64,000 nucleotides of DNA from Rebecca billardiae RCC1528 (GCA_965240325.2 OZ251228.1:2418001-2482000), one strand, 5' to 3'; numbered from the stretch's first letter, positions 1-48,552 are shown. Numbers and translations: made by a program. The notes: generated from the letters alone by a model not told the origin.

Positions 1-2610
1 CCGCGGCGGGCATGCGCATCTTGAGCGAGGCCCGCAGGAAGCCGAAGCGGCGCACCGCCTCCGGCGCGCGCGGCATCCTCGCGCGGCCGCGCCGCTCGAA
101 GATGGGCGGGCGGTGCAGCGGCTGCGCGGCCGAGTGCACCTTCTCGTACGACAGCTCGCGCGCCTCCTCGACCGTCAGGATGTCCGTCTCGAACATGGAG
201 GCGATCACGGCGTTCCAGAGCAGTGCCCACTTGCGCTCGATGATCGGGTGCATCGTCGGGTACAGCAGCGCGCGCATCGGCTGCGGCCGCGCCTTGCCGT
301 CCGTCGGGAACACCTGCGCGACGAACGCGGCCGGCAGGTCCGCCATCCGGCGCAGCGGCACCTGCGACGCCGACTTGCGCGGCCCCTGGAAGTACAGGAT
401 GCTCAGCCCGCGGAGCGTGCCGAAGATGACGCAGCCGACGATGTACCAGTGGTACGTGGACGAGAGGTAGACGAGCATGCCCGAGATCCACACGACCAGC
501 TGCTGCATCGAGCGCGTGAGCAGCTCGGGCGCGGCGGCGAGCTGCGGCGGCAGCGTTGGGTCGTTGCTGATCCGTCCGAGCAGCCCGTGCAGGTCGAGCC
601 GCAGCGTGGCGATCGCCACGCCGCGGATCACGACGACGAGCTCGACCATGCCCTTCAGCCCGAAGACGACGAGCCAGAAGAGGACGACCGCGACCCCCGC
701 ATACTGCGGCATGTACACGTTGTTGTCGAACTCCCTCGCCCTGCGCATGAAGGTGCCCGGGTTGAAGGTGGTGCGCAGCACGACCGCGGCCGAGTGCACG
801 ACAAACAGCGTGCGCACCGTCTCGTTCCTCGGGTACGCGAGGAAGACGGCGAAGAGGCCGAGCTGCAGCAGGTACGGCAGCGCCTTGTCCGGCTGCAGCA
901 GCGTCTGCCAGATCGTCGCGCCCGGCTTGAGCCGCATCTTCGCGCCGTCCGCGACGATCTGCACGAGGCCGGGCGCGAGCAGGCCCGCAAAGATGGGCGC
1001 GTTGTCGGTCGGCTTCATCCACTCGCCGTCCGGCACGTACAGCTGGAGCGCGACGAGCAGCAGCATGTAGAAGGAGGCGACGTGGTACGTGATGATGCGC
1101 GCAAAGCCGCCGAGCAGGTTCCACCACGCGTGGATCTCGTTGTGCCGCTTGCACCCGGCGAGCGAGGCCTTCCAGTCGACGTGGCGCAGCGCCTCCCACC
1201 GCTCCTCCTTGGGCAGCTGGATGATGGCGCGCCCGTCGTGCGTCACGATCTTGTTGATGCGCTCGTGCGTCCAGAACTGCTCGTTCCAGTCGTCGTAGTT
1301 GACGCGTGTCTCGGTGTTCCTGAGCGGCCGCTCTATCGGCGCGCCCCTCGCAGAGAGCCCCTTGAAGTTGTACGAGAAGAAGTACTCGTACAGCGGGCGG
1401 ATGTACGCGCGCAAGTAGCGAGACTCGGGCCCCGGCCCAGCGTCCGCCGCCGCCTTCGCCGCCTTCGTCGAGTGGCGCTTCGAGAGCCCCGCCTTGGGCG
1501 TCAGGATGGGCGTCGGCTCGAGCGGGCCCTTCCGCTGGCCCATCCAAGCGTCGTCGAACGGCTGCGACTCCTCGTCCTCCTCCTCCTCATCTTCCGACTC
1601 GAGGATGGACTCGCCGCCCCACGACGGCCGCGCCGAGCGCTCGCCGCCCATCGAGGGGCGCGCAACGCGGTACGCGTTGGTGTGCGCGCGCAGCGTGGCG
1701 AGCGACTGCGCCTCGAGCGTATTCGCCGCGACCGAGCGGCGCGCCGAGGCCGGCCCAGACTGCCCGACCGACAGGCGGCCCGCGTGCGGCGTCTGAGCGC
1801 GGGAGGAGCGGCCGCTGGTGTTGCGTGTCCCCAGCGGGCCGCCGGGCGAGTGCGCGGGCTGGCTCGGCGAGGGCTGGCTCAGCTGAGCGTGCTGCCCGCG
1901 CGTCGACCACCTCTGCTGCTCGCCCTCCGCTGGGCGACCCTCGCGGAGTGTGGGTGTGGGCGGCGCGATGACCGGCGGCGGCCGTGAGACGGACGCCCAC
2001 GTGCTCGTGCCCGCGTCTGCGACGGCGAGCAGCGGCCCGCTCGGCGAGGGGGGGGCGGCGGCCACGGCGTCCTCGGCCGCCCTCGCCTGCGCGGCCGCAT
2101 ACGCCGCCTCCTCCGCCTTCACCGCCAGCTCCTCCGCGCTCGGCGGCGGCGGCACGTACTGGCGCGCGCACTCGAAGAAAAAGCAGAGAATCTCGGGGCA
2201 GAAGCGGATGTTGCCCGCCTCGCCCCACAGGCAGAGGTAGAGCGCGAGCTCGCGCAGCCGCTGCGCGTGGTTGGGCACGCGGTACTTGATGAACACGATG
2301 TGCCGCCGCCGCTCGAATGAGTGCAGCCCCGAGCTCACGTCCAGCCAGCGCTCGAACGACTCGAAGGTGAGGTCGTGCAGCTTCTTCGCGCCGATCAGCT
2401 CGTCCTGGTACGCCGCCGTGGTCGCCGCCCACATCTGCGTGAGGTGCACGTGCTGGTTGGCCACCGAGTCCGGGTCGAAGCCGTAGATGTGCTCCAGCTC
2501 GATGAACATCTTCGCGAGGTCGTCGATCGCCTCGCCGGAGAGGTTTGTCGCGGGCGTGTTGCCCGAGATGAGCGCGGACTCGGGCGCGCGCCGCGGCGCT
2601 TGAGCCTGCG

Positions 2611-2656
<46 letters not shown>

Positions 2657-5436
2657 CGCCAGGTCGCCGTGCGGCGCGCCCGCCGCGCCCGCGCCCGCCG
2701 CGCCCGCGCCCAGCGCGGCGCTCGCGCCGCCTTCGCCGGCCCCGGCGGGCTCCAAGTCCTCCTTCGAGGACGAGACGAACCCCCTGCGCAGGCCCTTCCC
2801 GTGCGGGCTGTCAGCGCCCGCGCGCACTGGCACGAGTCGGTCCAGCCCGGCCTTGTCGCGCGGGCGGCGAGAGTAGCCGCGGGTCATGCGCGCACGCGCG
2901 CGGAGCTTCGCCCTCGAGCTCAAGCGCCGCGCCTTCGCCGCCGCCGCCGCGGCCAGCTCGCTCGCCCGCTCGCGCATCAGCGGGTGCGCGAGCGGGACGA
3001 GCACGCACGCCCAGCAGCACGCGACCACAGCCATCACCCAGAGCCACCACGGCTCGGGCGGGCGCTGCCAGCAGTAGCCCATCTTGCCGAGCAGCGCGCA
3101 GCACTCCGCGCCGCCGTGCACCTCCTCCGCCCACGCGCGCAGCACGTGGTTCGCGCGCTGCCGAATCGAGCAGCCGCGGTACTTGCCGCCGGGCATCACG
3201 TTGAGGCACGCCTCGATGCCGGCGCTCGCGTTCACGCGCGTGTGCGTCTCGTTCATCGCGCGGTCGCACTGCAGCGCGATGATCTCCTCGAGGTCCTCGT
3301 ACTTGTCGAAGGGGAGCGCCGTGCAGATCGGCTCCGCGCGCGGGACCGCCGCGAAGTCGTGGTCCGACAGGTTGCGGCACGTCTTCCCCCAGCCCACGCT
3401 GCGCGCACGGCAGAGCGGCCCGCACCAGTCCTGCTCGCAGATGCAGATGTGCGAGTCTGTCTCCGTGCAGTTGGCGTCCCACGAGGCGCACTGCACCTTG
3501 GTGCACGTGCCGTGCGGCCCGCAGTAGGCGGGATCGGTCAGGTTGCACTCCCGCCCGCCGTACACGATCTCCTTGTAGTACTCCTCCTCGAGGTACGGCG
3601 TGTAGAAGACGCGGTGCTCGTGGATGAACTCGTGCGTCGGCAGGTGCGGCGGGTCGCACGTGAGCTGCTCCTTGCCCTCCTCCTGGTAGAGGCGGATGTG
3701 CTCGATCTCGTACCGCGCGGGCAGCTCGGCGCACAGCTCGCCCAGCCACTCCCGGTTGTTCAGGTACTCGCCCGTCTGGTCGTCGTAGATGATGCACGTC
3801 GTGCACACGGAGCGCTTGCAGTCGACGCAGCAGTCGCACGCGTACTCGGGGCACCAGCGCCAGCCCCAGCGCGGCGCCATGTCGATGTTGAGGATGAAGT
3901 ACATGGCCTCGCGCGGCATCTCGCGCGGGAGCATGGTGCCCGACATGTCGGACGTGTACGGGCTCCCGGCCACGTCCTTGAACGTCATCGGCCGCTCCTT
4001 CGCAACCGACCACGCCGGCACGTGGAACTGCTTGTTGTCGTCGAGCGTGAAGAAGGTGAAGCCGTCAGGGCCCGTCTTCCACTGCGCCTGCCACGTGTGC
4101 TGCTCGGAGAAGTGGGTCTCCCTGAGCATCGTGCACGCGGAGAAGGCGTCGGTGTGCATCAGCTTGCCGTGCGGGTAGTACTCGTCGCCCTGCGCGCACG
4201 CGCAGCACGGTGGGAGCAGGCGACGCGGATCGCGTGAGAGAGCGCGCGCGCGCGGGCGCGTGCGCGCTCGCGCGCGCTCGCGACACGCACCCAAAACTCG
4301 TAGTTGATCGCGACGTCGTAGTACGTGCCGTACGGCTGGTACGGGCCGTCGGGGGTGGTCGAGTTCACGTCGTTCAGCCCGTACCTGTCCGCCCACGGGT
4401 ACAGCTCCTCGTAGTACTGCAGCTTGACGGTGCCGTCCACGTCCGTGTAATTCTCGGGCACGCAGCCGAGCACCGGCCGCTCGAGCGCGTACTTGTGCTG
4501 CCCCGGCCCGGCCTGCACGGAGGTGCACACGAAGGGCTGCTTCGTGCGGATGCGGCGGAGCATGTCGGCCGGCTGTGGCCCGCAGATCCCGCCGTCGACC
4601 TTGCTCTGGTAGTCGTACAGGTAGTTTCCAGGCATCGTCTCGATGATGTCAATCTCGGGCGCGCCTCGGCCCACGCCGTAGTCGCACTTGTGCAGCTTCT
4701 GCGAGCCGAACTGGTTGGCCTCGTAGTCCTTCTCATCAGGGCACTGGTCGAAGTTGAACGGCCAGACATTGTCCGTGCTGTCCTTGAACGTCGCGCGCCC
4801 CAGGTTGCCCATCAGCCAGAAGGCGGGCCACAGCCCGCCGACGTCGTGCCGCGCGGGCATCTGCGCCTTTAACTCCATGAAGCCCTCGGTGAAGCAGAAC
4901 TTGTTCCTGCGAGGAGGCGGGGCGGGGCGGGGCGGCGGGCTGGCGGGTCGGCGGCGAGCGTGCGACGCGCACGCGCGCGCGCGCGCGCACGCGCGCGATC
5001 CGCACCATGTCTGCATCATGGGCGTCTGATAGTAGCGCATCAGGTCCGGGTCGTACGGAGAGTACCAGTTCTCGTTGTTTGCGACGAGGACGAGCTTGCC
5101 GCCTTCGGTCCACGCGAGCGACGAGTTGTAGTAGTTGTACTGGTAGTTACTGTAGACCGGCGCGTTGAGCCCCGTCCACAGCGGGTCGTCGCCGTCGTTG
5201 AACGTGCGGTTGTCCATCTCGAACTCGTCCGAGTACACGAGCTTGTACCGGATGCCGCGCCTGGTGATCCAGCGGGCCTCCATCGGCGTTTCCGGGTCGA
5301 CGTACTCGGTCCACTCCACGTCATCCTCTGCGGCCACCCCAGGCGCCACGGCAGGCAGCAGGAGCGCGAGCAACGCCACCGCGAGGCGGCGCCGTGCCAA
5401 AGCCGCGCCAAGGGGTGCGTGTCGCGCGACACCCAT
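1..5436 (-). CDS. KRE6/SKN1-like GH16 beta-glucan transglycosylase fused to FKS1/callose-synthase-type 1,3-beta-glucan synthase (GT48); 3' partial. Exons 5436-5006, 4906-4291, 4189-<1
   Basis: ATG 5436, signal-peptide-like LAVALLALLLPAVAPGVAA. KRE6 motifs YKLVYSDEF, MMQTW|NKFCFTEG (intron 4907-5005), GLWPAFWLMGNLGRA, RGAPEIDIIE (ExDxxE). After intron 4190-4290 a stop-free frame of 1396 codons runs to base 2: TM WWLWVMAVVACCWACVLV (~3050-2995), FKS1_dom1 motif LALYLCLWGEAGNIRFCPEILCFFF (~2250-2175), NYDDWNEQFW, several TM helices, WNAVIASM and PEAVRRFGFLRASLKMRMP at the start of the synthase catalytic region. Confidence 0.9.
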
Positions 5437-5583
5437 CGTCGATCGCTCGTTGGCCGGCGCGCCTTGCCTCGCCGTCCGCCGTTCCGGTTCCGGTAATCCG
5501 GTCGGGTCGAAGAGGAGACGAACACACGCCGAGCACAACGGTCTCGCCGAGCGCACTCCTCGAGCTCGGGGGAGCGATCGAAA
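5437..5583. promoter_or_regulatory. Probable compact bidirectional promoter
   Basis: Only 147 bp separate the divergent ATGs at 5436 (-) and 5584 (+). Confidence 0.55.
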
Positions 5584-8371
5584 ATGCAGCTCGCCACCGC
5601 CGCCGACAGCGTGCTCGTGTGGGACGCGTCGTCGCTGGTGGAGCCACAGCTTGAGTACCGCGAGCACGGCGACGCGCAAGTCTACTGCGCCCGATGGAAC
5701 CACAACGTACGGCCGCGTGCGACCGGCGTGCGCCGCGCGCGCGCCGCGCGGCGGCGAGGATGGAGGGCGGCGCGTCACCCTGCCCTCTCCCGCGGGCGCT
5801 CCCGCGCGCGCTCCCGCGCGCGCCTGCCCCGTGCGCGCCCCGTGGCTGCAGAATCGGGTGATCGCCTCGTCCGGCGATGACGGCAGCATCCTCCTGCACA
5901 GCGATGCCGGCACGCGCGATCTGATGGGCGCGGAGCCGGGCGCGCACTCGCCCGCGCTCGCGCTCGCCTTCAGCGGCGGCTCGCGCTTCCTATGCGCGGG
6001 CGGGGCGGACTCGGTGATCAGGCTGTGGGATCTGAGGCAGCAGGCGAGCGCGGCCCGCCCGCGCCGGATCCACGCGCACGGCTCGGCCGTCACGTGCGTG
6101 TGCTGGGCGCCCGAGCGCGCGGCCGACTCGGCGCGCATGCTGCTCACCGCCGGCTCGGAGCTCGGCGAGGTGACGACGCACGCCGTGCGCGCGCCGGACG
6201 ACGAGCCGGCGTGTGTCTCGCGGCTGATGCTCGGCGACGGCCAGCTCGACCTGGCGTGCACCGCCGTGCAGTACTCGCCCATCCGGCGCACGACGCTCGC
6301 GAGCGCCGACTCGTCCGGCGCGGTGCGGCTGTGGGACATTGCCGCGGCGTCGCGCGACGGCGCGGACGGCGGCGCGCCGACGCACGAGTTCGCCGAGCAC
6401 TCGCTGCCGTGCGCGGGGCTGGCGTGGTCCGCCGTGAACCAGCTGCTCCTCGCCTCCGTCGGCGCGGACGGCACCATCGTCTTCTACGACACGGCGCAGC
6501 GCAAGGCGGTGAAGCGCGTGCAGCTGGACAGCGGGCTCACGTGCGCCGCCTTCTTCGGCGACGGCGTGACGATCGCGGTGGGCACCGACGAGGGCGCCGT
6601 GCACCTCTTCGACCTGCGCAAGAGCCTCACGCCGCTGCAGAGCGCCGTCGCCTCGGCGAGCGGCTCGCCCGTCGCGGACATCATGTTCCAGCACGTGCTC
6701 GCGCCGCCCGCCACCGCGCCCTCGCCCTCGCCCTCGCCCTCGGCCGCGGACGCGGACGCGGACGCACGCGAGCGCACGCCGGGCAGCGGCGAGCGCCCAG
6801 CCGCAGCCGGCGCGGCCGACGAGCCAGCGCCCACCCGCCAGCACGGGCGGGCCGAGCGCGTCTCGCCCGAGCTGCGCGAGCAGTACCCGCCCGTCGCCGA
6901 GCTGCAGCGCGGCGTGCGCCGAGGCTCGGAGGACAAGCTGAGCGCGCGCGCGCCGCCGCCGCCGCCGCCGCACAAGCACGCCCCTGCCGCCGACGGCGCG
7001 CATGGGCACTCACGCCACGCGTCCGACCCGGAGGACGACTCCGGAGCCCGTGCGCCCCTGAGCGCGCTCGAGAACACCAAGCCCACGCGCTCGGGCACCG
7101 CGCAGCCGGAGGCGCCCTCGGCCAGCGGCGATGGCGCGCCAAGCCTGCGGCGCGCGCCCGCCCAGCCGCCGTCAGCAGCCGGCGCGGAGGTGCGCACCCC
7201 CAGCGCCGAGTCGGGCGCCGGCTCGCGCGCGCGCGCCACGGCCGCCGAGGAGGGGCGTGGCAGCGGCGACGCGCGCAGCGGGCCGACGGGCGCGCACGCA
7301 CGCGCCCCCCGCGCCGCGCCTGAGGCCACGCCGTGGCTGGGCGGCACGGCGCAGGCCGAGCGCGGCGGCGGCAGGCACGCGGCCGCACTGCTCTCGCCGG
7401 AGGGCCCGGCAGGCTCTGGCGCGCCCATCCCACAGCCGGTCTTCAGCGACGTGGGCTCGGAGGCGCGCAGCGGCAGCGGGGCGGCCTCGTCACGCAGCGG
7501 GCGCGGGGACGGGCCGGACGCTGCGGCGGCGCGCGCGCCTGAGCTGCGCGCGCCGACGCCCGCCTCGACCTCGCCTGCCGCGGCCAGCGGGGGCGAGCGG
7601 GCGGGCGCTGCGCACGCGCGCCACGCGCATCGCGCGTCGAGTGTGTCGGTCAGCTCGGCGAGCACTGTCGCCTGCAGCACAGGCTACGAGGTGCGCGCGC
7701 GCGCAGCCGTGCGCGCGTACGCACCACCGCAGCGCCGCGCGCTCGGCGGCGTGGCCGGTTTGGAGGGCGTGCTGCGTGCGGCTGCGACCCCCTCGGCGCC
7801 GTACTCACGCCCACCCGCCCAACCCCCGCCCCCCCCCCCGCCCCGACCCCCTCGCCGCTCTAGGCGGTGGCGTGCGCCACCGGCGCTGCGGCAGCGCCCG
7901 CCCCGTTGGCCACCACCTTCGCAGCGGAGCTGGCCGCGAGCTCCACCCAGCTGGGCGCAAAGCTGGAGGAGGCGCTGCAGGACACGCGCGAGGCGCTGCA
8001 CGCCGACATTCGGGACCTGCACGTCGAGCTGCTGCGCCAGTTCCAGCTGTGCACGGTGCGCCGCGGTCGGGCCGCGCGGGCTGCGCGCACGGCCGAGCGT
8101 GCGCTGCGCTGGGCAGGCTGTGCACGGCAGTGGCGCGCGCGCGCGAGTCCACAAGAGCGTGCGGCACCGTCGCGCTCGAGAGGTGCGCGAGCGCTCACAT
8201 GCCCCGCGCGCGCCGACGCCGCCTGTTCGCCAGGCACACTTTGAGCGGCAGCTCGAGCGCAACAACGAGCAGGTGCGGGCGCTCAGTGCCGAGGTGGGCG
8301 ACTTGCGCGCGCAGAACGCGTCGCTCGCAGCTCAGCTGCAGGACCGTGACGGAGTTCATCCCGCCGACTAG
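5584..8371 (+). CDS. NEDD1: NEDD1/GCP-WD, gamma-tubulin ring complex targeting WD40 protein; exons 5584-5706, 5852-7690, 7864-8055, 8234-8371
   Basis: N-terminal WD40 repeats (ARWNHN|NRVIASSGDDG, LCAGGADSVIRLWDL, LASVGADGTIVFYD), low-complexity linker, C-terminal coiled coil LHADIRDLHVELLRQF typical of NEDD1. Three GT-AG introns restore one frame. Confidence 0.85.
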
Positions 8372-18496: not shown

Positions 18497-18714
18497 GCTG
18501 CTGCAGGGCGGCATGACACTTGGCCGACGAGCAGCAGGCAGCAAGGCGGCAAGCAAGCTTCACAGATCGGCGGTTTGACTGTTTGAAGCCGCCGGTTGTT
18601 TCTCTTCCCATCAACTCTTCCTGCCGGCGGGCCAAATTTGGGCTGTTTGGCCAAAGTCTTTTGGCGGCCGAGGCTGCATCGGGTGGCCGCCTGGCCGGTG
18701 CACTGTGCAGCCTG

Positions 18715-19845
18715 GCCCGGGCCAAGGGGAGTCAGGGTACAGCACGTCCAGTTGGGCTGCAGCTGGAGCTTGGGTACAAAAGCTTCCCGCGGCGCAGCGG
18801 CACTCGCCGCCGCCGCCGCCGTCGAGGGACGGTTGTGGCGCGCACGGCGTGAGCCGCTGCGGGCGCTGAGGTGCGCGCGACGGCGGCGCGCCCGGCGGCG
18901 CTGCTGTAGGAGGCCACTGCCCTCCTCTCTGCCCCGCGCGCTTCGCTCGTCGTCGCCGTCTCCGCGCCTGCGACTCAGCGCGCACGCGAGCGCGGCACCG
19001 CCCGGCAGCCGGGGCAATCTCTGCCGTGACTGCGCATGTGCGTCGCGACCTGGTCGGCCCAGCGCGCGAGGCGCGTGCGGGCGAGGTAGGGCCAGTATGG
19101 GCGCGCGCCATGCCGCCTCAAGTAATCCCATCAGAGCGTACAACAGGGAACTGAGCACGTGTGTCTGGTTGGCCGCTTGGACTGTGTTCAAGCAATGTAC
19201 GGGCCATCGTCGAGGCGATCTCGAGGCACTCAGTCAAAACGTCAGTTCAGCGCGCAGACGACCTGGGCGAGAGTCACTGACAATGTATGACTCGCATGAT
19301 CACAAAAAGCTCTGCAACTATCGCGTCTGTACGCCTACTGCCTCGATCGTGCACACTGACGTCTGCGCTTGGGTGCCGCATTGTTTGTCAACGTTGTCGA
19401 CAGAGGTGCAAGGCCCGCGACATGCCCACCGGCGCAAGGTCGAGGCGGCATGGCGCGCGCCCATACTGGCCCTACCTCGCCCGCACGCGCCTCGCGCGCT
19501 GGGCCGACCAGGTCGCGACGCACATGCGCAGTCACGGCAGAGATTGCCCCGGCTGCCGGGCGGTGCCGCGCTCGCGTGCGCGCTGAGTCGCAGGCGCGAA
19601 GACGGCGACGACGAGCGAAGCGCGCGGGGCAGAGAGGAGGGCAGTGGCCTCCTACAGCAGCGCCGCCGGGCGCGCCGCCGTCGCGCGCACCTCAGCGCCC
19701 GCAGCGGCTCACGCCGTGCGCGCCACAACCGCCCCTCGACGGCGGCGGCGGCGGCGAGTGCCGCTGCGCCGCGGGAAGCTTTTGTACCCAAGCTCCAGCT
19801 GCAGCCCAACTGGACGTGCTGTACCCTGACTCCCCTTGCCCGGGC
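18715..19845. repeat. Long near-perfect inverted repeat: arms 18715-19119 and 19442-19845, 322-bp spacer
   Basis: Arms are reverse complements over ~405 bp; I saw only 2 substitutions and one 1-bp indel. Confidence 0.95.
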
Positions 19846-19923
19846 GGTGGCGGTGGCGCCCGCGCGCGCGGTGTCGACTGTCGAGCTGAGCTGGCACCGG
19901 ACTTTTGTCAAGATCCGGCAGCA

Positions 19924-20464
19924 ATGGAGGACGGCGACGACAACACGCTGGCGGATGCGCTCCGCGCGAGCGTCGAGAGGTGGGCGGCGCCTCTGCGCGT
20001 GCGCCGCGCGCGCGGCTCGCGCGCTCGGCGCTCATCCCCCCCCTGCCCTCCCGCGCGCCGCCCGCGCGGCCCCGGCCAGCCTGCGCACGCACGCGCGCGC
20101 GCTCGCTGACGCGCAGGGGTATCAGCGCGAGCTCGAGCGTCGGATCCAGGGCCTGTGCAGCTCGGTGTGGTTCGTGCAGAAGCACGAGTACGCGCTCGCG
20201 GGCAAGTGTGGCTGCGGCTCCGACGTGCAGTACGTGCACCACCACGAGACCGCTGCGATCCGCGCCGAGACGATGGAGGCGCTCGTGAGCGCGATGCGAC
20301 AGCACCTGCTCGCCGCGCGCGGCCCGACCGCCAGCGCGCTCTTCCGCGTGGCGCAGGCGGAGTTCGAGCTGTTCGCGCGGGTGGAGCGGCACGTGCTCGT
20401 CGCCCACCCCGAGCCACCGCCGCACCAGGTGCTCGCGCTCGCCGCCGAGCTCGTCGACTGCCTG

Positions 20465-20496
<32 letters not shown>

Positions 20497-21490
20497 GCCG
20501 GACGAGCTGATGGCGCCCGTGCTGCGCCGGCTGGTGCTGCTGCTGGGCTCGCGGCTGCTTCACGCGCGCTCGCCGCCGCCGGACCTCCCGGCCGCCGTGG
20601 CGAGCACGCTGCTGCGGCGCGGCCGCGGCCACTGCGCGTGGGCAGCGTGCGTGCTGCAGCCGGAGGTGGCGGACGCGGAGCGGTCCCGCTGGCTCTGGGC
20701 GGTGCTCGTCGACGCGCCGGCGGAGCTGGGCGCGCTGCCGCCCGCGCAGGACCTCCTCGCCGTGCTGCGCCAGCTCCCACTCGCGCCCGCCGCGCTGCGC
20801 CGCGGCGCGGACGGCCTGTCAGACGAGCAGCTGAGCCGCGCGCTGCTGCAGCCGATCGCGAGGGCGGCGCGGCGCGCGGCTGAGGATGGCGGCGCGCACG
20901 GCGGCGCGCACGGCGGCGCGGCGGGGCACGGCGGCGTGCTCGAGCGGCTCGCGCTCGTGTGCGCCGCCGTCGGCGTCGTCCGCCCCGCGCTCTGCGCCGA
21001 GGCCGCCGCCGCGGCGAGCGCGGCCGGCGCGGGCGCCGCGGCCGCGGCCGCGGCCGCGCTCGCGCTGCTGCCAATCGAAGGCGCGCCGCTCGGCGCTGCG
21101 GCGCTGTGGCGCGGCGTGGCGGCGCTGTGCGGGCTGCCCGCGCTGCGGCCGGAGGACTGCCTCGCGCAGTCCGCGCCCGCGCGGCGCGCGCAGGCCGCCG
21201 CCCTCGCCCTCGCCCTCGCGCGCGCGCGCCCCGCCGTGCGCCGCGCGTACGAGGCCGCGCCCGCGCTCGCCTCCATCAACGATCTCACTGGCTACCCTCT
21301 ACTCACGTTACTCAGGCGGCTGGCGCTCGCGGCGCGCGCGCGCGAGGCGGCGGGCGAGGAGGGCGGCGAGGCGGCGAGCGTGGCGGCGTGCGTCGCGCAG
21401 CTGCTCGCCGGCGTCGCCGCCGCCGCCTCCTCCGCCGCGCTGTCGGACGCGGACGCGGCGGGAGCGGCGGGCGGCGGCGAGGGCGGCGAC

Positions 21491-21528
<38 letters not shown>

Positions 21529-21915
21529 GGCCGCGGCGGGCGCAGATGGCGATTGGGCGCGCGGCGCGAGCGTGGGCGGCGCGGAGCTGGGCGCGCTGCG
21601 CGCCGGCGCGAGCGACGCGCTGCGCCGGCTGTGCACCGCGCTGCCCGCCGTCCTCGGCCCCGCCCTGCTCGCCATCCACGTCGCCGTGAGCGCGCCCCCG
21701 CCTCCGCGCCCGCCGCCGCCGCCGCAGCCGCCGGGGCGCGCCGGCCCGGCCGCCGCCGCGCTCAGCGAGGGCGATGGCGGCGCGGCGCGCGCGCGCGTGC
21801 TCGAGGTGGTGGCCGAGCTGCCGCTGGCGGAGTGGCAGCTGCGCCGGCCGGACGTGCTCACGCTGCTCCGCCTCCTCCGCTTCCCGCCTGCGCTCGGCGA
21901 GGCGCCCGCCGCCCT

Positions 21916-21960
<45 letters not shown>

Positions 21961-22750
21961 GGAGGGCGCGCCGCGCGCGTGGCTCGACGCGGCGCTGGGC
22001 GCGAGCGGCGGCGGCGCGGGCGCGCGCGACGAGCTGAGCGTGCGCGTGGGCATGGCCGTCTTCGAGCGCATCACGCCCGAGCAGGTCGCGCCGGACGCGC
22101 GCAGCCTCGCGCTGTGTGCGCTGCTGCACGCGCGCGCTGTGACGCCTGCGGCTTGGTGGTGGCGGCAGCTGGCGGGCGCGGCGGGCGCGGCGCTCACGGC
22201 GGAGGGCGTGGACGAGGGCGTGCGCGCGCGGCTGCACGAGTGCACGCCGGCCGAGGGCGCGCCGCCGCCGCGCGGCGCGCTCAGCGCCGTCCAGTGCCTC
22301 GCCGCGCTCGCCGAGGCGGAGGTGGCCGCGGCCGCGGCCGCGCGCGGCCGCGCGGCCGCGGCCGGCGCGGGCGAGGCCGACCTTGGGGCGTCGACGGCGG
22401 AGGGCGCGGCGCGCGTCGTGCTGGTGCGCACGGCGTTCTGGCGGCGGCTGCGCGAGCTGCGCGCCGCGGCCGCCGCCGCCGCCGCCGCCTCGAGCGGCGC
22501 CGCCGCCGCGCTCTCGGGCGCCGCCGCCACGGCGACGGCGATCGCGGCGGCGGCGAGCGGCGCGCGCGCCGGCGGCGGCGGCGCGGCCGAGCGCGCGAGG
22601 GCGGTGCGCTCGGCCTTGTTGGCGCACGGCGGCGGCGGCGGCGTGGGCGAAGCGGAGGGCCCGCCGCCGCCGGTCAGCCGCGTCATCTTCGAGCGGCTGC
22701 TCACGCTCCTCGCCTCGCACTTTGTGTACGCGGGCGGAGGCGAAGGCGAA

Positions 22751-22781
<31 letters not shown>

Positions 22782-25700
22782 TGGCGGGCGGCGCGGCGGC
22801 AGCGCATGCGCTGCCGCCCGAGCTGGCGGGCGCGCTGCGCGGCTGGCTTGCGGAGGACGGCTCGCAGCCGGGGCGCGCCGAGGCGGAGGTGCGCGCGCTC
22901 ATGCTGCACACCCTCGCCACCACGCCGCTCGACGAGCAGGGCAGCGCGGCCGCGGCCGCGGCCGAGGCGGACGCGGCCGCCGCCGCGTCCGCCGACGGCG
23001 GCGCCGCGTGCGAACACGCGCCCTCGGCGGCGTGGGAGCACGTGTGGTGCGCGGCGCTCGCGCCGGCGGCGGCGGAGGGCAGCGCGGCGGCGGCGGGCCT
23101 GCTGAACACGCTGCTCCACGGCCGCTTCGCCCGCGCGCCGCCGCAGCCCCTCCGCGCCTCGCCGCTCGCGCACACGCTCCGCGCCGCGCTGGCCAACGCG
23201 CCGCGCCGCGCGCCGCTCAGCTGGGCGGCGCAGGCGCTGCCCTTCCTCGCGGTGGCGGCGGCGGAGGTGGAGGCGCCGCGGCTGCCGACGGAGGTGGCGG
23301 GCGCGGCGCGCGAGCAGCTCGACGCGGTGCGCGCGGTGCGCGCCGCGCGCTCCGCGCGCGCCGGCGCCGGCGCCGCCTCGCTTGCCGCCGCGGCTGTGGG
23401 CGGCGTGCGCGCGGCGGTGGACTCGGCGGTGGCGGGCGCGCGCGCGGGCGCGGGCGGCGGCGGCGGCGGCGGCGGGCGGGGCTACGGCGCGCTGGGCGGG
23501 GGCGCGGACAGCAAGCGCGCGGGCCTGCTCAGCCACGAGGTGGGCGGCGGCAGCGCGCCCTCCGCCCGTCCGCACGAGCCCACCGACCTCGAGCGAGCCT
23601 CGGCCTCAGATCGAGTGCCGCTCGCGGCCGCAGACAGCGCGGCCGCGGAGCACGCCGAGGCGGCGATGGGCGACTCGTCGGAGGAGGAGGAGGAGGAGGA
23701 GGGCGTGCCCACCGAGCCGGTGGTGCAGGGCGGCGCGCCGCAGCGCGGCGCGGAGGACGGCGCCGACGCCGCGCCGTGGCGCGACGAGCCCGCGGCGGGC
23801 GGCGGCGGCGCGGGCGGCGCGGCGTGGGCGGAGGAGGAGGCTGCGGCCGCCGCCGCGGCGCGCGCGCCTGGCTCGGTGGTCTGCTCGCGCGCCGAGCTGA
23901 GCGCGTGCGGGCTGGGCACGCTGCTCGACGTGGCGCAGGCGCTGGGCAGCACGCCCGCCGCGCTGCTCGGCTGGGAAGCGTTTTGGGTCCGCTACTTTGA
24001 GGCAGAGGCGGCGGCGCCCGGGTTCCTGCCGCCGGCACTCAAAGCGGGTGTGTGCGCGTGTGTGCGCGTGTGTGCGTGTGCGTGTGTGCGTGTGTGCGCG
24101 TGTGTGCGTGTGCGTGTGTGTGCGCGTGTGCGCTCGCGGCGCGCGAGCGCGGCCGCGGGGCGCAGCCGCGGCCGGAGCGCGCCGCGCGCCGCGCGCGCAG
24201 TGCCGCGGCGTCGGTGCGCCGCTGCGCCGCCCACACCTTCCTCGCCCTCCCCGCCCCCTGCCCCGCCCCGCGCAGAGCTCTCGTCACACTTCCACCAGCT
24301 CGCGCTCGCGCACGACGGCGGCGGGCCCACGCCACAGCGCGCGCTCTTCATGCTGTACAACGCGTGCACGACGTGGGCGCAGCAGGTGCTGCCGGGGGGC
24401 GGCGCGTTCCTCAGGGTGGGCGGCGGCGGGCGCGCGGCGGACGCGCCGCGCGCCCGCCGCGCCCACTCGCCATTCGGCGCGTGGCTGCTCGGCCAGCTGC
24501 CGCCGCCGTACGCGCCGCTCGGCGCGGACGGCGGCGGCGCCGCCGCGTCAGGCGGTGCGAGCGCCGCCGCGCCGCCGCCGCCGCCCGACGCCGCCGCGCT
24601 CGCCGCCGAGCGCGCGTCTCGGCAGCGGGACGCGCGCGCGGCCGCGGTCGCCGCCGCGGTCGCCGAGGGCGGCGTGAGCGAGGAGGACGCGGCGGCGATC
24701 GCCGCGGCGCTCGAGGAGGCGGAGGCGGAGGCGGAGGCGGAGGCGGAGGCGGAGGCGGAGGCGGAGGCGGAGGCGGAGGCGGAGGCGGAGGCGGAGGCGG
24801 AGGCGGAGGAGGGCGGCGCGTCCGAGCAGCGGAGGCGGCAGCAGCATGGAGCGCGCACGGCCAGCAGCGGCGGCGGCGGCGGCGGCGCGGAGGGCTGGGC
24901 GCACGCGGACGCGGAGGCGTGCCTGGCCGAGCTTCTGCCGCCGCCGCTCCCGCCGCCGGAGCCGCACGAGCTGGCGATGGGGCCGGGGCAGCAGGAGGCG
25001 TGGGAGGCGCGCCCGCGGCGGATGGCGCGGCTGTGCGCGCTCGTTCGGCGGCGCGCCGCGAGGCGCGCGGCGGCGCGCGGCGCGCGCGGCCGCGGCGGCG
25101 CGGCGCTGATCGAGCTCGGAGGCGGCGGGGAGAACCTAGGCGGGGAGAGCGCGGCGCGCGAGGCGTCGATGGGCGACACAGACGAGGAGGAGGAGGAGGA
25201 GGAGGACGACGACGACGACGACGACAATGACGACGACGACGACGACGAGGAGGAGGAGGAGGAGGAGGAGGAGGGCGATGAGGGCGCCTCTGCGCCCGCC
25301 TCCGCGCGCGCCCGCCGCTCCCCGTGGTCCGGCCTCCGCGCGGACGGCGCCGAGTTTGCGGACGCGTGCGCTCTGATCGAGGCGCTGGACGCGCAGTACC
25401 TGCGGCTCGTGCGCCGCCTCAACCTGAACCGCACCGAGGCGCAGCCCGCGCGCGTGGCGGTGCGGCGCACCGACGGGCTGTGCTGCGAGCAGCCCGTCAC
25501 GTTTGTGGTGCCGCGCACGGCCATCGTGCCAGGCCCTGAGCACGTGCGGCACGCGCTGCAGGCGAACCGCGCGCTGTTCGCGTCTGCGCACAGCCGGCTG
25601 CACGGCAGCACGCGCGCGCTCGCGCTCTCGGCCGCGCTGCTCGCCGAGGCGCCGAGGGCGCTGCGCGCACCCGACGCCGACGGCGCCGCCGACGGCGCCG

Positions 25701-26419
25701 CCGTCGACGGCGGCGGCGCGGCCGGCGGCGGCGGCGGCGCGGCCGGCGGCGGCGCCATCTCGGAGGCGGAGGGCGCGGAGCTCTTCTTCGAGCTGCTGCC
25801 GCTGGCGCTCTCCCACGACCTGCCGCCCTCCGTGGCCGGGCTGGCGCAGGGCGTGCGCGAGCTGCTCTCGTCGCTCGGCAGGCGGCACGTGGCGGGGCGG
25901 GCGCGGCTGCAGCCGAGGCTGCTTCGTGCGCTGCTGCGCGCGCGCGCCGTGCCGCCGCCCGCCGAGCGCGCGGCGCACGCGGGGCGGCTGCTAGCGGCGG
26001 AGGCGGCGGAGGAGGCGGAGGCGGCCGCGCGCGCGCGACCGTGGCACATGCCGCCCGCGGACGCGCACCTCGGCGCGCCGCCGCCGCCCGCGCCGACGCC
26101 GTCGGCCGCGCTCGCGCCGCCGCCGCCCGCCGCGCCGACGCCCGCCGACGCCGCCGCGGCCGCGGCCGCGGCCGCGCGCGGCGGCGCGTGCGGCGGCGCG
26201 ACGGGCGCGGCCGACGGCGCGCCGGCGTGCGGCGCGCGCGCCTCGGCGCGCGCGCCTGCGCCTCGGCGCTCGGGCGAGCTCGGCGCCTCGCTGCTCGAGG
26301 CGGGCGGCGAGGAGGGCCATCCGGCGCGCGCGGGCGCGGGCGCGAGCGCGTCGGGCTGCCCCCGTCTGGCGCGCACCCGCCTCAGCAGCCGCAGCCGCCG
26401 CAGCAGCAGCCGCAGCCGC

Positions 26420-26452
<33 letters not shown>

Positions 26453-26959
26453 TCGTCGCGCGGCAGGAGACGCACTGCCTCTGCCCGCGCTGCAGCGCGC
26501 GGCTGCTCGTGCCCGGTGGCGCGGCGCGCGTGCAGTGCCCGCAGTGCCGCACGGTGATGCAGGTGGGCGCGCCCGGCGGCGGCCATGCTGCGCCGCAGCC
26601 GCAGCCCTTCCAGGCGGCCTGCCCCGAGTGCGCGGCGAAGCTGCTCGTGCCGGCGGGCGCGCCGCGCGTGCAGTGCCCGCGCTGCCGCGCCGTGCTGCAC
26701 GCGCGGCCGGCCGAGCGCGCGCTCTCGCGCGAGCCGCCGCCCGCGCCGCCGCCGCAGCCGCCGGCGTCCGCGTTTGGCGGCGGCGCGCCCGCGCCGGGCG
26801 GCGCGCAGCCGGCGGGCTACGCGCCGCCGCTCCCGCCGCTGCCCGCCGCGCCGTCGGCAGCCGGCGGCGCCGCCGCCTCCGGTGCGGAGGGCGAGGGCGG
26901 GCGCCTGGGGCTCGACTGGCTGCGAGGCACACTCAGCCCGGCGCTGCTGCTGCGCGCAC

Positions 26960-26991
<32 letters not shown>

Positions 26992-27985
26992 AGCGGCACA
27001 GCGGGCGGCGGCACGCGCGCGGGGCTGTTGCGCTACCTGCGGCTGCTGCGCGCGTTCGCGCGCGCGCCGCTCGAGCACCTGACGCGCGCCGACCTCGAGC
27101 TGCTCCTCTCCTCGTTTGCGACGGACGCGCTGCCGGCGGCGCTGCCCGCGCGGCCGGGCGACGCGCGGCGCGAGCTGGCGGCGGACGGAGGCGCGCTTGA
27201 GGGCGCGCTGGGCGGCGCGCTGAGCGCGCTCGGCGCGCAGCCCGCGCTCACGCCCGCGTGCGAGCGGCTGTGCACGATGCTGGCCCGCCGCGCGTTCCCC
27301 GACTACGTGCGCGTCGTCCTGCGCGCCGCGCTCGACGGCGCGCGGCTCGCGGCCGCCGCCGAGCGCGAGCGCGCGGACGCGGCGCGCGCCGGCGGCGCGG
27401 AGGGCGCGGGCGCGGCGGCGGCGCGCGAGCCGGCGCGCGCGGCGTGGGACGAAGTGTACTGCAAGAGCGTGCCGTACGAGCAGCTGAGCGCGGCGCACGC
27501 GAGCGCGCTGCTGCACGACGTGGCGGCCGCCCTGCCGCTGCCGGGCGCGCACGCCGCGGCCGCCGTGCGCGTGTGCAGCCGCCTGCTCCTCGACTCGCCC
27601 GCGGCGCTCGCGGAGCTGCGCGCGGTGGCGCGCGGCGCCGAGGCGGCGGTGGCGCGCGGCGGGGCGGAGGCCGAGGAGGGCGAGGCGGACGCGCGGAGCG
27701 AGGGCTCTGGCGGCCTCGCCGCCGAGGCCGACGACGCCGCCAACGCCAACAACACCAACCACGAGCACGATGCGGGCGCGGGCGCGGACGCGGGCGCCGC
27801 CAGCGCCAGTGCCACCGCGCCCGCTCCTCCGCCTGAGCTCGGGGGCGGCGCCAAGGGCAGCGCACAGGGCGCGGAGGCGTCCGAGGGCGTGTGGGCCGAG
27901 TTCGTCGCGCTCTTCCTCGCCGCGCTCGCGCCGCTCCCCGCACGTGCGCACGCGCCCGCCGCGTCCGAGCCCGGCGGCGGGAGCG

Positions 27986-28026
<41 letters not shown>

Positions 28027-29129
28027 CCGAGCGGGTGCGGCTCCGTGAGTGCTGTGCTGCCTCCGCTGCTCACGCTGCTGCGCTCGCTCGTGCGCGAGTG
28101 CGGCGAGGGGCTGATGGACAGCGTGTGGTACCTGGCGGCGGAGATGCTCGCGCCGAGGGCGGCGGTCGAGCTGCGCGCCGCGCCGCGCGCGCGCGCGCTC
28201 ATCTCCGCCGAGCTGTGCGCGCTGCCCTGGCACGCGCTTAGCGCGCACCGCGGCCGCGACGGCGCGTTCTGCGCAGGGCTGCGCGCGCTGCTGGAGCCGT
28301 TCCCTGCGCTGGCAGCGGAGGTCTTCGCGCGGCTGGCGTGGCGCCCGTTCTTCGAGGGCGTGGCGCAGGGGCGCGTGGACGGGTGCTGCCTCGCCGAGCT
28401 CCTCCCCGTCGCGCTCTCCGCGCACATCGGCGCGGCGGGCGCGCTGGGCGCTCCATCGCTGCAGCTGCTGTTTGGGACAGCCGCCGCCGAGTTTGGCGCG
28501 GCCGCGGCCGCGGGCGGCGGCGCCGACGCGCGCGGCGGCGGCGGCGAAGGCGGTGTGCAGGCTGGCGGCGCGGAGGCGGGGGCGGGGCTCTCGGCCTCGG
28601 CGCTCGTCGAGCTGCACGCCGCCGCCTTCGCCCGCCTCCCCGCCGCCGCCCTCGGCCGCGCCTTCGACGGGCGCACGCTCTTCCGAGCGCTCGCGCGCGC
28701 GCGCGGCGCGGACGAGCCGAGCGCGCGCGTGCTCGCGTGCGCGCGGCTGCTGTCGCGCGTGGCGGAGTCGCTCGGCGCGGCGGGCGTGGCGGCGGTGGTC
28801 GCGCAGGAGGTGGCCTCGCTGCTGTGGACCACGCTCTCCGCGCACGGACGCAGCTACCACCTGCCCGCGCACGCGCACGTCGAGCTGCTCGCGCGCTGCC
28901 TTGTGCCCGCGGTCCGAGCGGGCACGGCCGCGGCCGCGGCGCGCGCCGCCGCGGCCGGCGGCGGCGCGGCCGCGAGCGCGCCGCCCGGCGCCGAGGGCGC
29001 GGCCGGCGCGGAGGGCGCGGCGGCGGAGGACGACGGCCCTGCGCACGCGGTGCTGCTGCAGTGCCTCCTGGCGTGCGCGCACCCCACGCCCGCCCTCTGC
29101 CTCGTCGAGGGCCAGCTCGAGTTTGGATG

Positions 29130-29164
<35 letters not shown>

Positions 29165-30959
29165 GCGGCGGCCGAGCGGTGCTGCCGACGGCGGCGGCGA
29201 CGGCGGCGCCCGCTGAGCCCGGCGCGGCGGAGGCGGAGGCGGAGGCGGCGCGCGCCGCGGCGTACAGCCAGCTCGCGAGCAAGTGCGCCGGCATCGTCGC
29301 GCAGTGCGTGAGCGGCGGCTCCGCCACGCTCGCCCTCGGCGTGCTGCGGTGCGCGCCGCTGTCTCTGAGCTCTGAGCGCGCAAGCTGTGCGCTGTGCGAG
29401 GCGGCACTCCAGGTGTGCGTGCGTGTGCGCGCGTGTGCGCGTGTGCGTGCGGTGCACGCCGACCCGCCGTGCGTGCGCCCCGCCGTCGCGTGCGCCCGCG
29501 CGCACACGCGCACGCACGTGCGCGCGGCGTGCACTGCACGCGCTGCGTACACACGCCGCTGCTGGCACGCACACGCACGCACGCACGCACAAACGCACAC
29601 ACGCACGCGCGCACACACGCACGCGCGCCGCCCCCGCGCGCGGCACGCGCCGCCGCAGGCGTATCTCACGCACACCGCCATCGAGATGGCCGCGCACGCG
29701 CCAGCCGGCGCGTCCGCGCCCGCCGACCGCGCCGCCGACCGCGCGGCGCTGCTCGAGCCGCCGCTGCGTGCGATCGGCGCGCTCTCGCAGAGCGCGGTGC
29801 GCGCGCGCGCCGCCGAGCGTGCCGCGCGCGCGTGCCGCGCGCGCGGCGCCGCGCGCGCGTGCGCCGTGGGCCGGCCGTGCGCGTGCGCGTGCGCACGGCG
29901 GGGCAGCGCGGGCGGCGCGCCCCGCCGCGCGCGCGCGCTCGCTCGCTCACGCGCGCTCGCCCCCGCGCCCCCGGCGTGCCACGTTGCGCTCGGCGCCGCG
30001 CTTCGCCCCGGCCGTGCTGCGTGCCGCCGCCGCCGGTGCCGCCGCCGCCGCCGCTGCGGGGCCGCGGCTGCGGGGCGCGCAGGCGGACCGACTGGTGCTG
30101 GCGTGCGTCGAGCAAGGCACACCGCTCACCTTCTGGCTGCTGATGGCGCGGCAGGTGTGCGCAGCGGCGGCACGCGCGCGCGCGCGGCCGCGCGCCGCGG
30201 GCGTCGCCGACACCGCGGCGCGCGCGCGCTCACGCGCTGCCGCCGCCGCTGCTGCTGCTGCGCGCGCCGCGCGCCCAGGCGCGCGCCCTCGGCCGCGCGG
30301 ACTCCGCGCGCGCCATGGCCGTGGCCGCGGCGTCCGTGCGCGCGGCCGCGCGGCTGCAGCCGCCCGCCGCGCGCCCCTTCGATGTGCTGCCCGCCTGGTT
30401 CGCCGCCCTCGAGTTGATCGGCGCGGAGGGCTGGGCGGCGGGCGCGCCCGCCGCCAAGCAGTGCGCGGCAGCGCTCGCGAGGCACGTGCGCGCGGCCGCG
30501 CGGCTCGCGGCGGACGGGACTGGGAGCGGCGGCCGCGGGGCCGGTGGCGGCGGAGGCGGCGGCGGCGGCGGGCTGAGCGCGCTATGGGAGGCCACCGCCG
30601 CCGCGGCCGACGCCGGCGGCGGCGGTGGCGGCGGCGGCGGCGGCGCGCAGCCGTCCGCCCCGCTCCGTCTGGCGGCGCGCGTGCTGCTGCTGCTGCTCGC
30701 CCAGCTGAGCGAGGACGCGGAGAAGGGCGTGCGCGGCGGCGCGGGGCGGCCCTTCGTGCTGGCGAGCGGCGGCGCGGAGGCCAGGGCGCAGGCGCACGCG
30801 CTCGTCGGCTGCGCGCGCGCAGACGCGTACAGGCACGCGCCGCGCCCCTTCTTCAGCCCGCTCGAGGCGATGATTGCGCGGCCGTGCACGCTCGCCGAGT
30901 GGCGCGCGCACGCGCTCGGCACGCTCTTCCCGATGGCGCTCTACCTGCCGCTCCTCTGA
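19924..30959 (+). CDS. EPG5: EPG5-like autophagosome-lysosome tethering protein with two inserted LSD1-type zinc fingers; introns 19999-20116, 24048-24275, 29413-29658, 29797-30082, 30155-30278; unresolved frame change near 26350
   Basis: Very long helical protein. VWFVQKHEYALAGKCGCGSDVQYVHHHE and ALDAQYLRLVRRLNLNRTE..CCEQPVTF..HALQANR resemble conserved EPG5 blocks as I recall them, and WEAFWVRYF lies in the expected order. Canonical GT-AG introns preserve the frame. The gene itself is well supported; the EPG5 label is from motif memory. Confidence 0.65.
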
Positions 30960-47109: not shown

Positions 47110-48552
47110 TCCTCTCAACAATTGATTACCCTATGGAGAGCACACCTGCACATCACACCTTCTCCTGGCCGCCTAGGCTTGCATGGCGGGCACCTGCGGC
47201 CCCAGCACTCTCCATAGTCTCCATTCGGTCGAGCTGCACCCATCACCCATCATGACTTCAGCCCGGGTGGGTGACAATTGGAGGACTCCTCTGGGCAGCA
47301 CGTGAAGCCGGCCAGCTCGGACGTGACCGTGGCCGACAGGCTCTCTGCTGGCTCCCACACCTCTTGAGTCTTTCAGCCTAGCTTGTAGCACAGCGCGCCG
47401 CTGATTTTCGGCGGAGCCTCGTGTGCTGTACTACAGGGCATACCCAATCAGCAGGTGGGCCGCTGGCAGGCTAGGTGCATCTGGTGCACTGTGGTGGCCA
47501 TTCCCCGACCACCCGACCCGCAGAGACGTGGCCTGCGCACTGAAACCGCACTGCTCACGCCAGACTGTACTCAGTACTGCTATAGGCTGGCTGCGCTAGG
47601 CAGTATCAAAGGCCATCCAGCTGCTAAGCGCCAGGGCCCACTATACAGCTGCTACACTCCCAGCCAGCCAGCCCACAGCCTGCTCAGGGGGTGAATTTCC
47701 ATCCCTGACTGCCCTCGTGGTGGTCCAGCACGGTCCCCTCGCAGCACCTGTCAGCCAGTTGTGCACCTCCACCCGTCCCAGAAAGCCCTTGAGCCCGTCT
47801 TATTCGGCTCAGCGGGCTCAAACCCCGTACCGACGGTAGGTTTTGAGCTCAGTGACTATGAAATGGACTGGCAACGAATAGCTGCGGGTATTTTCAATAC
47901 CAGGGGCGGCCTTGATGTAGGGGGCTGGGACGACGGGTGGCATTCAATTTATCTGACTGACTCAGCCCACACACCCGCCCAGCTCATACAGTTTACTATG
48001 ATTTAACGTGCACACTTGGTTAAGGGCCCGTTAAGGCGTGAAATTGACGCCATCCAACACTGCACAAAGTGACAAAGACACCGCCACAAAACAGACCGGC
48101 GCAGGCAGGTGAGGGGCGCGTTGCCGCACCTCATCGAGGCGGCCATTGCAGCAAGCGGCCGCCCCGCGCTCGGAGGCACAGTACCCACCTGGTCTGTGAG
48201 GGCTATAGATGCAGTAACGATGACAGATAGCATGCAGCAGTGGGCCTCAAACAGTGACTGACGAGCTGGTATAGACAGCCAAACACAAGGGTAACCAATT
48301 GTTGAGGGGACTGATCTCGCCCGCCTGAGCTGTGTGCGTCTCTTATTCTTACAGTTTACTATGATTTAACGTAGTGCACACTTGGTTAAGGCGTGATTAG
48401 TAGCTAAACTGTAATGGCCGCCTCGATGAGGTGCCCACGGCAACGCGCCCCTCCGGACCCCTGCCCGTGCCCTGCCTGCGCCGGTCTGTTTTTTTCCACG
48501 ACTGCTTGCTTTAATATGGCTGGCGGCCTGAAGTTATTTGGCGCGGGCAAGG

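Follow-up and report, generated by a model that had tools for sequence, protein, structure and literature searches.

A predicted GH16–GT48 fusion protein in Rebecca billardiae RCC1528, a candidate enzyme for the synthesis and branching of β-1,3-glucan

How β-1,6 branches enter β-1,3-glucans has long been an unsolved problem, in the walls of fungi as well as in the glucans that marine algae store. Here we describe a gene at the start of a 64,000-nucleotide stretch of DNA from Rebecca billardiae RCC1528 (GCA_965240325.2 OZ251228.1:2418001-2482000), the whole of this stretch being called the window below. The gene lies on the minus strand, begins at position 5436 and is cut by the window edge at base 1. 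From its sequence we conclude with high confidence, and in agreement with an initial annotation of the window, that it joins a Kre6/Skn1-type GH16 domain to an FKS-type β-1,3-glucan synthase. The locus is best explained as the 5′ two-thirds of one real gene encoding a GH16–GT48 chain, and it is quite likely that this chain both synthesises and branches its glucan; its complete product should comprise about 2700-3000 aa.

The closest described systems are those of oomycetes, some of which encode a GH16-fused β-1,3-glucan synthase as a single polypeptide, and the fusion has been called oomycete-restricted (PMC13612389: Willet et al., 2026, citing Judelson, 2017 and Morris, 2009). Because the oomycete fusion is not mentioned in the main text of Morris (2009), the claim rests on PMC13612389 together with the Pythium insidiosum protein GLD91630.1 (2587 aa). 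Like the window protein, this has SKN1_KRE6 ahead of FKS1_dom1 in one chain, and there the Glucan_synthase domain comes next; the suggestion in the initial annotation that the architecture might be undescribed therefore has to be given up. The two proteins are nevertheless built differently. In GLD91630.1, about five hydrophobic segments (aa 452-650) separate the GH16 and FKS parts, where the window protein has one helix and a disordered linker, and no match to EGF is found, whereas the window protein carries EGF-like and helical cysteine-rich modules that set it apart from the oomycete type.

In algae, the stand-alone TGS proteins have a signal peptide, an SKN1 domain, a transmembrane (TM) helix and a cytosolic tail (PMC10543733, PMC2173943). 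This layout, found in diatom TGS1/2 and in Pleurochrysis PhTGS, equals that of the N-terminal module of the window protein, and the algal BGS proteins belong to the same synthase family (GT48). However, TGS and BGS are the products of two genes, whereas in the window the TGS-like tail continues into the N-terminus of the synthase. Our literature searches returned no description of a GH16–GT48 fusion for algae.

The Kre6-family GH16 protein Ghs2 of S. pombe is the obligate partner of Bgs3, both being required for branched β-1,3-glucan, and modelling places Ghs2 near the extrusion pore of Bgs3 (PMC13612389). The proposed logic is that of the window fusion, but the complex is non-covalent. Yeast Kre6 is a type II protein with a cytosolic N-terminus (PMC10543733), whereas the GH16 domain of the window protein precedes its anchor (type I). 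A related theme of a fused remodelling domain is seen in the chytrid chitin synthase ORY39038, which carries an SKN1 domain (PMC7341943) paired with a GT2 chitin synthase and not with GT48. The initial annotation had also drawn a parallel with the α-1,3-glucan synthase Ags1/Mok1. As an analogy of design this stands, Ags1 also combining a membrane synthase and an extracytosolic remodelling domain in one chain, but it does not extend to homology: the domains of Ags1 are unrelated, its product is an α-glucan, and Pfam gives only SKN1_KRE6 and FKS1_dom1 in the window protein, with no domain homologous to those of Ags1.

The gene model was obtained by splicing positions 5436-5006, 4906-4291 and 4189-1 of the minus strand, which gives 1745 aa with zero stops. 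Both introns are of the GT..AG type, beginning GTGCG and ending GCAG, and when either is excised the protein aligns to its homologues without gaps at the junctions (...QTW/NKFCF... and ...EFWG/DEYY..., the slash marking the junction). From 4648 to 2 the minus strand is open in a single frame. The two introns, the frame of at least 1745 aa and the lack of in-frame stops in 1-4190 reported by the initial annotation were thus all reproduced. The features of the gene, all on the minus strand, are as follows.

5006-5436, minus: exon 1, with the ATG at 5436-5434; aa 1-35 at the N-terminus resemble a signal peptide, and the first part of GH16 comes after them, with a SKN1_KRE6_Sbg1 match
4907-5005, minus: intron 1, 99 nt, GT..AG, in frame and without a stop; gap-free alignment when excised
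4291-4906, minus: exon 2, GH16 core with a Pfam SKN1_KRE6_Sbg1 match (4.8e-24)
4639-4656, minus: GH16 catalytic motif EIDIIE, aa 228-233
4190-4290, minus: intron 2, 101 nt, GT..AG, within which codon periodicity disappears
1-4189, minus: exon 3, 1396 uninterrupted codons holding the end of GH16, the cysteine-rich modules, the TM anchor, the linker and the FKS moiety
3410-3559, minus: EGF-like cysteine module, aa ~560-609
3089-3379, minus: second cysteine-rich module, adjacent to the membrane, aa ~620-716, predicted helical
2981-3043, minus: single TM anchor, aa 732-752, with a Kyte-Doolittle peak of 2.40, the strongest in the protein
2552-2980, minus: Ala/Gly/Arg-rich disordered linker, aa 753-895, about 140 residues, predicted cytosolic
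2135-2551, minus: first part of the FKS N-terminal cytosolic domain, from FGF.PDS to CFFFECAR, with the start of FKS1_dom1
1433-2134, minus: 234-aa insertion of low complexity, interrupting FKS1_dom1
1112-1432, minus: second part of the FKS N-terminal domain, with the motif NYDDWNE.FW
377-1111, minus: first TM bundle of the FKS moiety, aa 1376-1620, recognised by hydropathy peaks
2-376, minus: cytosolic segment leading into GT48, whose last ~24 aa (2-73, ...EAVRRFGFL.ASL..RMP) align to the start of Glucan_synthase in the relative P0001

The N-termini of homologues fall at the same place as the ATG at 5436, and in the 5437-5850 interval upstream codon periodicity is absent and there is no further coding signal on the minus strand. 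Since this upstream region lacks coding signal and a WD40-repeat gene (5165-8371, plus strand) lies head-to-head with the fusion gene, the ATG at 5436 is taken as the start. The ~400 nt of 5437-5850 are probably a bidirectional promoter and 5′ untranslated region common to the two genes.

Membership of both families is indicated by Pfam profiles, a check that the initial annotation had proposed. SKN1_KRE6_Sbg1 (PF03935, curated cut-off 30 bits) is matched in all three exons, at 1.5e-15 (57.1 bits) in exon 1, 85.1 bits in exon 2 and 3.6e-12 (45.9 bits) in exon 3, with profile positions 95-479 of 501 covered, as expected of a Kre6/Skn1-type GH16 protein. FKS1_dom1 (PF14288, cut-off 27 bits), the N-terminal cytosolic domain of the FKS/callose synthase family (GT48), is matched in exon 3 at 6.1e-19 and 68.8 bits, in two stretches split by the insertion; a comparison with the PDB also pairs the FKS region with residues 347-490 of yeast Fks1 and with GSC2 (E-value 2.6e-23). 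One exon holds the end of GH16 and, behind it, the FKS part, and no stop codon separates the two. A separate GH16 gene is unlikely, because it would require a stop codon and none is present, and we infer that a single transcript crosses both parts.

The evidence that we regard as decisive for the fusion is homology and collinearity, and not the openness of the frame. When 1200 residues spanning both parts were run with HMMER against all of 1.84 billion representative proteins, the matches were P0001 (2381 aa, 764 bits, 46% identical), P0013 (2563 aa) and P0010 (1972 aa), along with shorter pieces that align to either side of the linker. The best match in this collection is 46-49% identical, and since this is below 50% the proteins of the R. 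billardiae genome must be absent from the collections searched; a search of the ESM Atlas gave only generic SKN1 clusters, with scores of 0.6. Pfam finds SKN1_KRE6, FKS1_dom1 and Glucan_synthase together in P0001, P0013, P0010, P0155 and P0157, and SKN1_KRE6 with FKS1_dom1 in the fragments P0003, P0008 and P0009. P0155 is a 2721-aa MMETSP transcript marked type:complete, P0001 comes from JGI 3300016822, P0009 is a fragment from the single-cell assembly of Picozoa sp. SAG22, and P0157, P0166, P0163 and P0171 are marine metagenome open reading frames (ORFs), the cluster of P0171 having 67 members; P0164 is also among the relatives that came from further searches. Of the sequences fetched, 38 match the window protein in GH16 and again in the FKS N-terminal part, and grouping them at 50% identity gives at least 16 clusters. 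The same architecture, which the initial annotation had suggested looking for in other data, is thus present in full-length relatives that include the MMETSP transcript.

The closest relative (P0002/L005, 49%) was called from an internal Met, with its frame open to the start of the contig. This upstream frame encodes the CS.RQRANHVL...ECC.LL module and a TM helix, and the protein is therefore a fragment of a fusion as well. Two further contigs, L001 and L002, are 7.5-8.0 kb long, and in each a single ORF nearly fills the contig, leaving short flanks.

In a MAFFT alignment with nine relatives, the window model is collinear across all 1745 residues. Measured against P0001, the ectodomain is 51% identical, the FKS N-terminal domain 57% in its first half and 53% in its second, and the membrane bundle 42%. 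The marine protist fusions (P0001, P0155, P0157/P0166/P0171 and P0009) match the window protein module for module, P0001 and P0155 being 40-57% identical by region; they differ from it in the absence of the 234-aa insertion and in the length and sequence of the linker, and none of them has been annotated or studied.

Several observations weigh against reading the locus as one gene for a synthesise-and-branch chain. The local GC content is 65-80%, and ORFs of 2653, 1901 and 1458 aa, of a length that can arise by chance, are found elsewhere in the window. They overlap on both strands at 18596-30417 in GC-rich sequence, perhaps as frames open by chance or as genes of repeat arrays, and they served us as a control for ORF length. 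Because the DNA is GC-rich and such long spurious ORFs occur in the same window, a stop-free frame is weak evidence, and with other ORFs of 1458-2653 aa present, openness was dropped as proof of the fusion. Throughout 4189-1, the GC content of third codon positions (GC3) stays within 0.85-1.00 in a single phase, with 0.94 in the linker and 0.93 in the 234-aa insertion, and this signal is lost in 5437-5850 and in intron 2. However, the linker values are matched by 31% of the GC-rich 427-nt stretches elsewhere in the window, and intron 1 is also codon-periodic, by chance; GC3 periodicity was therefore abandoned as a significance test for the linker and is supportive only. The linker is poorly conserved, with 22-30% identity when it is taken together with the TM helix. 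None of the nine aligned relatives has the 234-aa insertion in FKS1_dom1, which only this copy carries. The sole matching sequencing run, X1 (2024), is of low depth and consists of sparse DNA-like contigs of 151-242 nt that do not include the linker, and no RNA run is listed. The predicted GT48 catalytic domain (PF02364) would lie beyond base 1, with only ~24 residues that align to its start inside the window. We know of no biochemical characterisation of fusions of the GH16–GT48 kind. The biochemical activity of the Kre6 family itself is described as unsettled in PMC10543733.

Two of these points, the divergence of the linker and the want of an RNA run for the gene, would suit a locus that yields two products. 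An internal promoter, alternative polyadenylation or an undetected 3′ exon in the linker would then give a solo GH16 protein and a solo FKS protein, the full read-through chain being made rarely or never. There are in-frame Met codons at aa ~784 and 910, the linker is of low complexity, and in diatoms, as in the haptophyte Pleurochrysis haptonemofera, TGS and BGS as a rule stand alone (PMC2173943, PMC10543733). We nevertheless consider this very unlikely, since the GH16 frame has no stop anywhere before base 1 and the relatives carry the fusion as single uninterrupted ORFs, one of them a complete transcript. Met910 lies within a block that is conserved in relatives and that reaches upstream of it, and the one weak in-frame intron candidate in the linker would, if excised, leave the fusion intact. 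The linker itself contains no stop, no Cys and no N-x-S/T sequon and is Arg-rich right after the TM helix; over its final ~25 residues (ESAL..G..AP...) there is conservation with P0001 and P0003, and conserved alignment blocks extend to both of its ends.

The insertion, together with the repeat-rich nature of the window, could also be read as the mark of an assembly chimera, or of a paralogue that is decaying and has lost its function. We find this hardly credible. The sequences that adjoin the linker on its two sides are collinear with independent relatives, 1745 codons are intact with a GC3 of 0.85-1.0, and the catalytic motif and all conserved Cys residues are retained. A hidden intron was considered as the source of the 234 aa and rejected: no in-frame candidate of the form GTG[CA]G...CAG was found, and the codon phase is kept through the insertion. 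The X1 contigs cover only 353-1445, 2267-2417 and 4075-4707. They are 94-100% identical to the gene and diverge from it at 1445, close to the downstream edge of the insertion, at 1300, and at 4250, inside intron 2, which suggests that X1 is a related strain or a paralogue that differs in the insertion and the intron.

On the synthase side, the FKS part begins ~150 residues past the TM helix, at the conserved FGF.PDS block. The predicted membrane bundle at aa 1376-1620 has three Kyte-Doolittle peaks of at least 1.5, against five in P0001, and this region is 41-42% identical to P0001 and P0155. Residue 1745 of the model aligns to residue 1451 of P0001, in which the Glucan_synthase domain starts at 1427. 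Pfam gave no GT48 match in the last 100 aa, a piece too short for one. The relatives continue for 930-1250 residues past the point that aligns to the window edge, and the Glucan_synthase domain is present in all full-length relatives. The order of parts seen by the initial annotation, namely a signal-like N-terminus, GH16, cysteine-rich modules, a TM helix, a linker, the FKS N-terminal domain, a hydrophobic bundle and the start of GT48, is borne out.

The predicted topology places the two enzymes on opposite sides of the membrane. The N-terminus is hydrophobic and signal-like, as judged by hydropathy, and the ectodomain that follows (aa 36-731) holds 33 Cys and 9 sequons, against none in the linker. 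A hydropathy peak stands at the same aligned position as the TM anchor in P0001 and P0155. With one helix after a predicted extracytosolic GH16 domain, the N-terminus of the FKS part should be cytosolic, and the distribution of Cys, sequons and Arg around the helix fits the topology proposed by the initial annotation.

Within the ectodomain, the E-x-D-x-x-E motif is intact, as had been claimed, and neither its two Glu residues nor its Asp vary among five full-length fusions; in the aligned homologues the motif reads EID[IV][IVL]E. The cysteine-rich modules were also modelled with AlphaFold2, with a mean predicted local distance difference test score of 70.5 over the whole modelled segment. The model of the EGF-like module gave weak Foldseek matches to EGF domains (probability up to 0.91, E-value 0.19), and Pfam matches to EGF_2/EGF_Teneurin occur in P0003 and P0009 at the position aligned to it. 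The second module has the conserved motifs CS.RQRANHVL and CC.LL, and a Foldseek search with its AlphaFold2 model found no structural match. An X8/CBM43 assignment was considered for this module and rejected, there being no structural match and the model being helical at moderate confidence.

A further alternative accepts the fusion and questions its activity: the GH16 domain might not branch the glucan at all, and might instead trim or release chains, or serve the synthase without catalysis, as a chaperone or in its localisation, the kind of role suggested for Sbg1 towards Bgs1 in fission yeast. The nearest solved structures by sequence, found with the homologue P0001 as query, are GH16 laminarinases, that is endo-β-1,3-glucanases, and the Pfam family includes Sbg1, described in PMC5127554 as a regulator of Bgs1 localisation; the unsettled activity of the Kre6 family (PMC10543733) also leaves room for such a role. 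In the other direction, the invariance of the catalytic Glu, Glu and Asp residues over divergent full-length fusions argues for catalysis, solid-state nuclear magnetic resonance of the Ghs2/Bgs3 system ties the GH16 partner to branched glucan, and RNA interference against the haptophyte TGS reduces β-glucan. On balance, we think a non-branching GH16 domain unlikely, if less so than the other two alternatives.

A plausible function for the fusion protein, by analogy with these systems, is to synthesise, extrude and branch its glucan. The GT48 part would draw on UDP-glucose in the cytosol to polymerise β-1,3-glucan, extruding the chain through its own membrane bundle. The GH16 domain, tethered across the membrane beside the exit, would cut and re-join the nascent chain and so introduce β-1,6 branches or cross-links. 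The fusion would have been built by letting the cytosolic tail of a TGS-type protein run on into the N-terminus of the synthase, and the whole would be a covalent counterpart of the fission yeast pair of synthase and remodeller, Ghs2 and Bgs3. The product of the window gene may be a vacuolar storage glucan, of the chrysolaminarin type put forward in the initial annotation, or else a glucan of the cell surface; the GH16 domain may be located in a lumen and active in branching.

As far as can be judged from sequence, the fusion is not confined to oomycetes, contrary to PMC13612389: the carriers include a Picozoa assembly, an MMETSP transcript and marine metagenome contigs. In a tree of the GH16 domain, the window protein clusters with P0155 and P0001 at 98% support, and the oomycete pair is distant and long-branched. 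In this tree, fused rows are interleaved with apparently solo ones, many of which may be fragments, and taxon labels are missing for most rows. It is worth adding that a member of the P0171 cluster, OUW50022.1, is a 2094-aa eukaryotic GH16–FKS fusion that NCBI assigns to a metagenome-assembled genome of Synechococcus sp. TMED187; its source is almost certainly a mis-binned picoeukaryote contig. In addition, P0163 (4377 aa, from an ENA metagenome) has SKN1_KRE6, Glucan_synthase and, in place of FKS1_dom1, PF26113, and may be a further variant of the architecture.

Elsewhere in the window, the ORFs at 48538-49932 (plus strand) and 62713-63951 (minus strand) have EF-hand pairs at equal residue positions (about 91-150), and may be paralogous copies; the former additionally has a RING finger.

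The wider reading that we put forward, rather tentatively, is that fusions of the window type are old and widespread in marine protists beyond the oomycetes, possibly of separate origin, and that they are the main enzyme for branched β-1,3/1,6 storage glucan, with about six paralogues in this genome. If this is true, the published restriction of the architecture to oomycetes is overturned, and the fusion provides a natural single-chain model for the coupling of synthesis and branching. Work of 2026 on fission yeast argued that a Kre6-family GH16 protein must adjoin an Fks-type synthase (PMC13612389), and a natural covalent fusion of GH16 and synthase, as predicted here, lends independent support to this adjacency model. 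The fusion also offers a one-gene system for expression, for mutagenesis of EIDIIE and for linkage analysis. At least 16 divergent clusters carry it, and marine protists may commonly make their branched storage glucan in this way.

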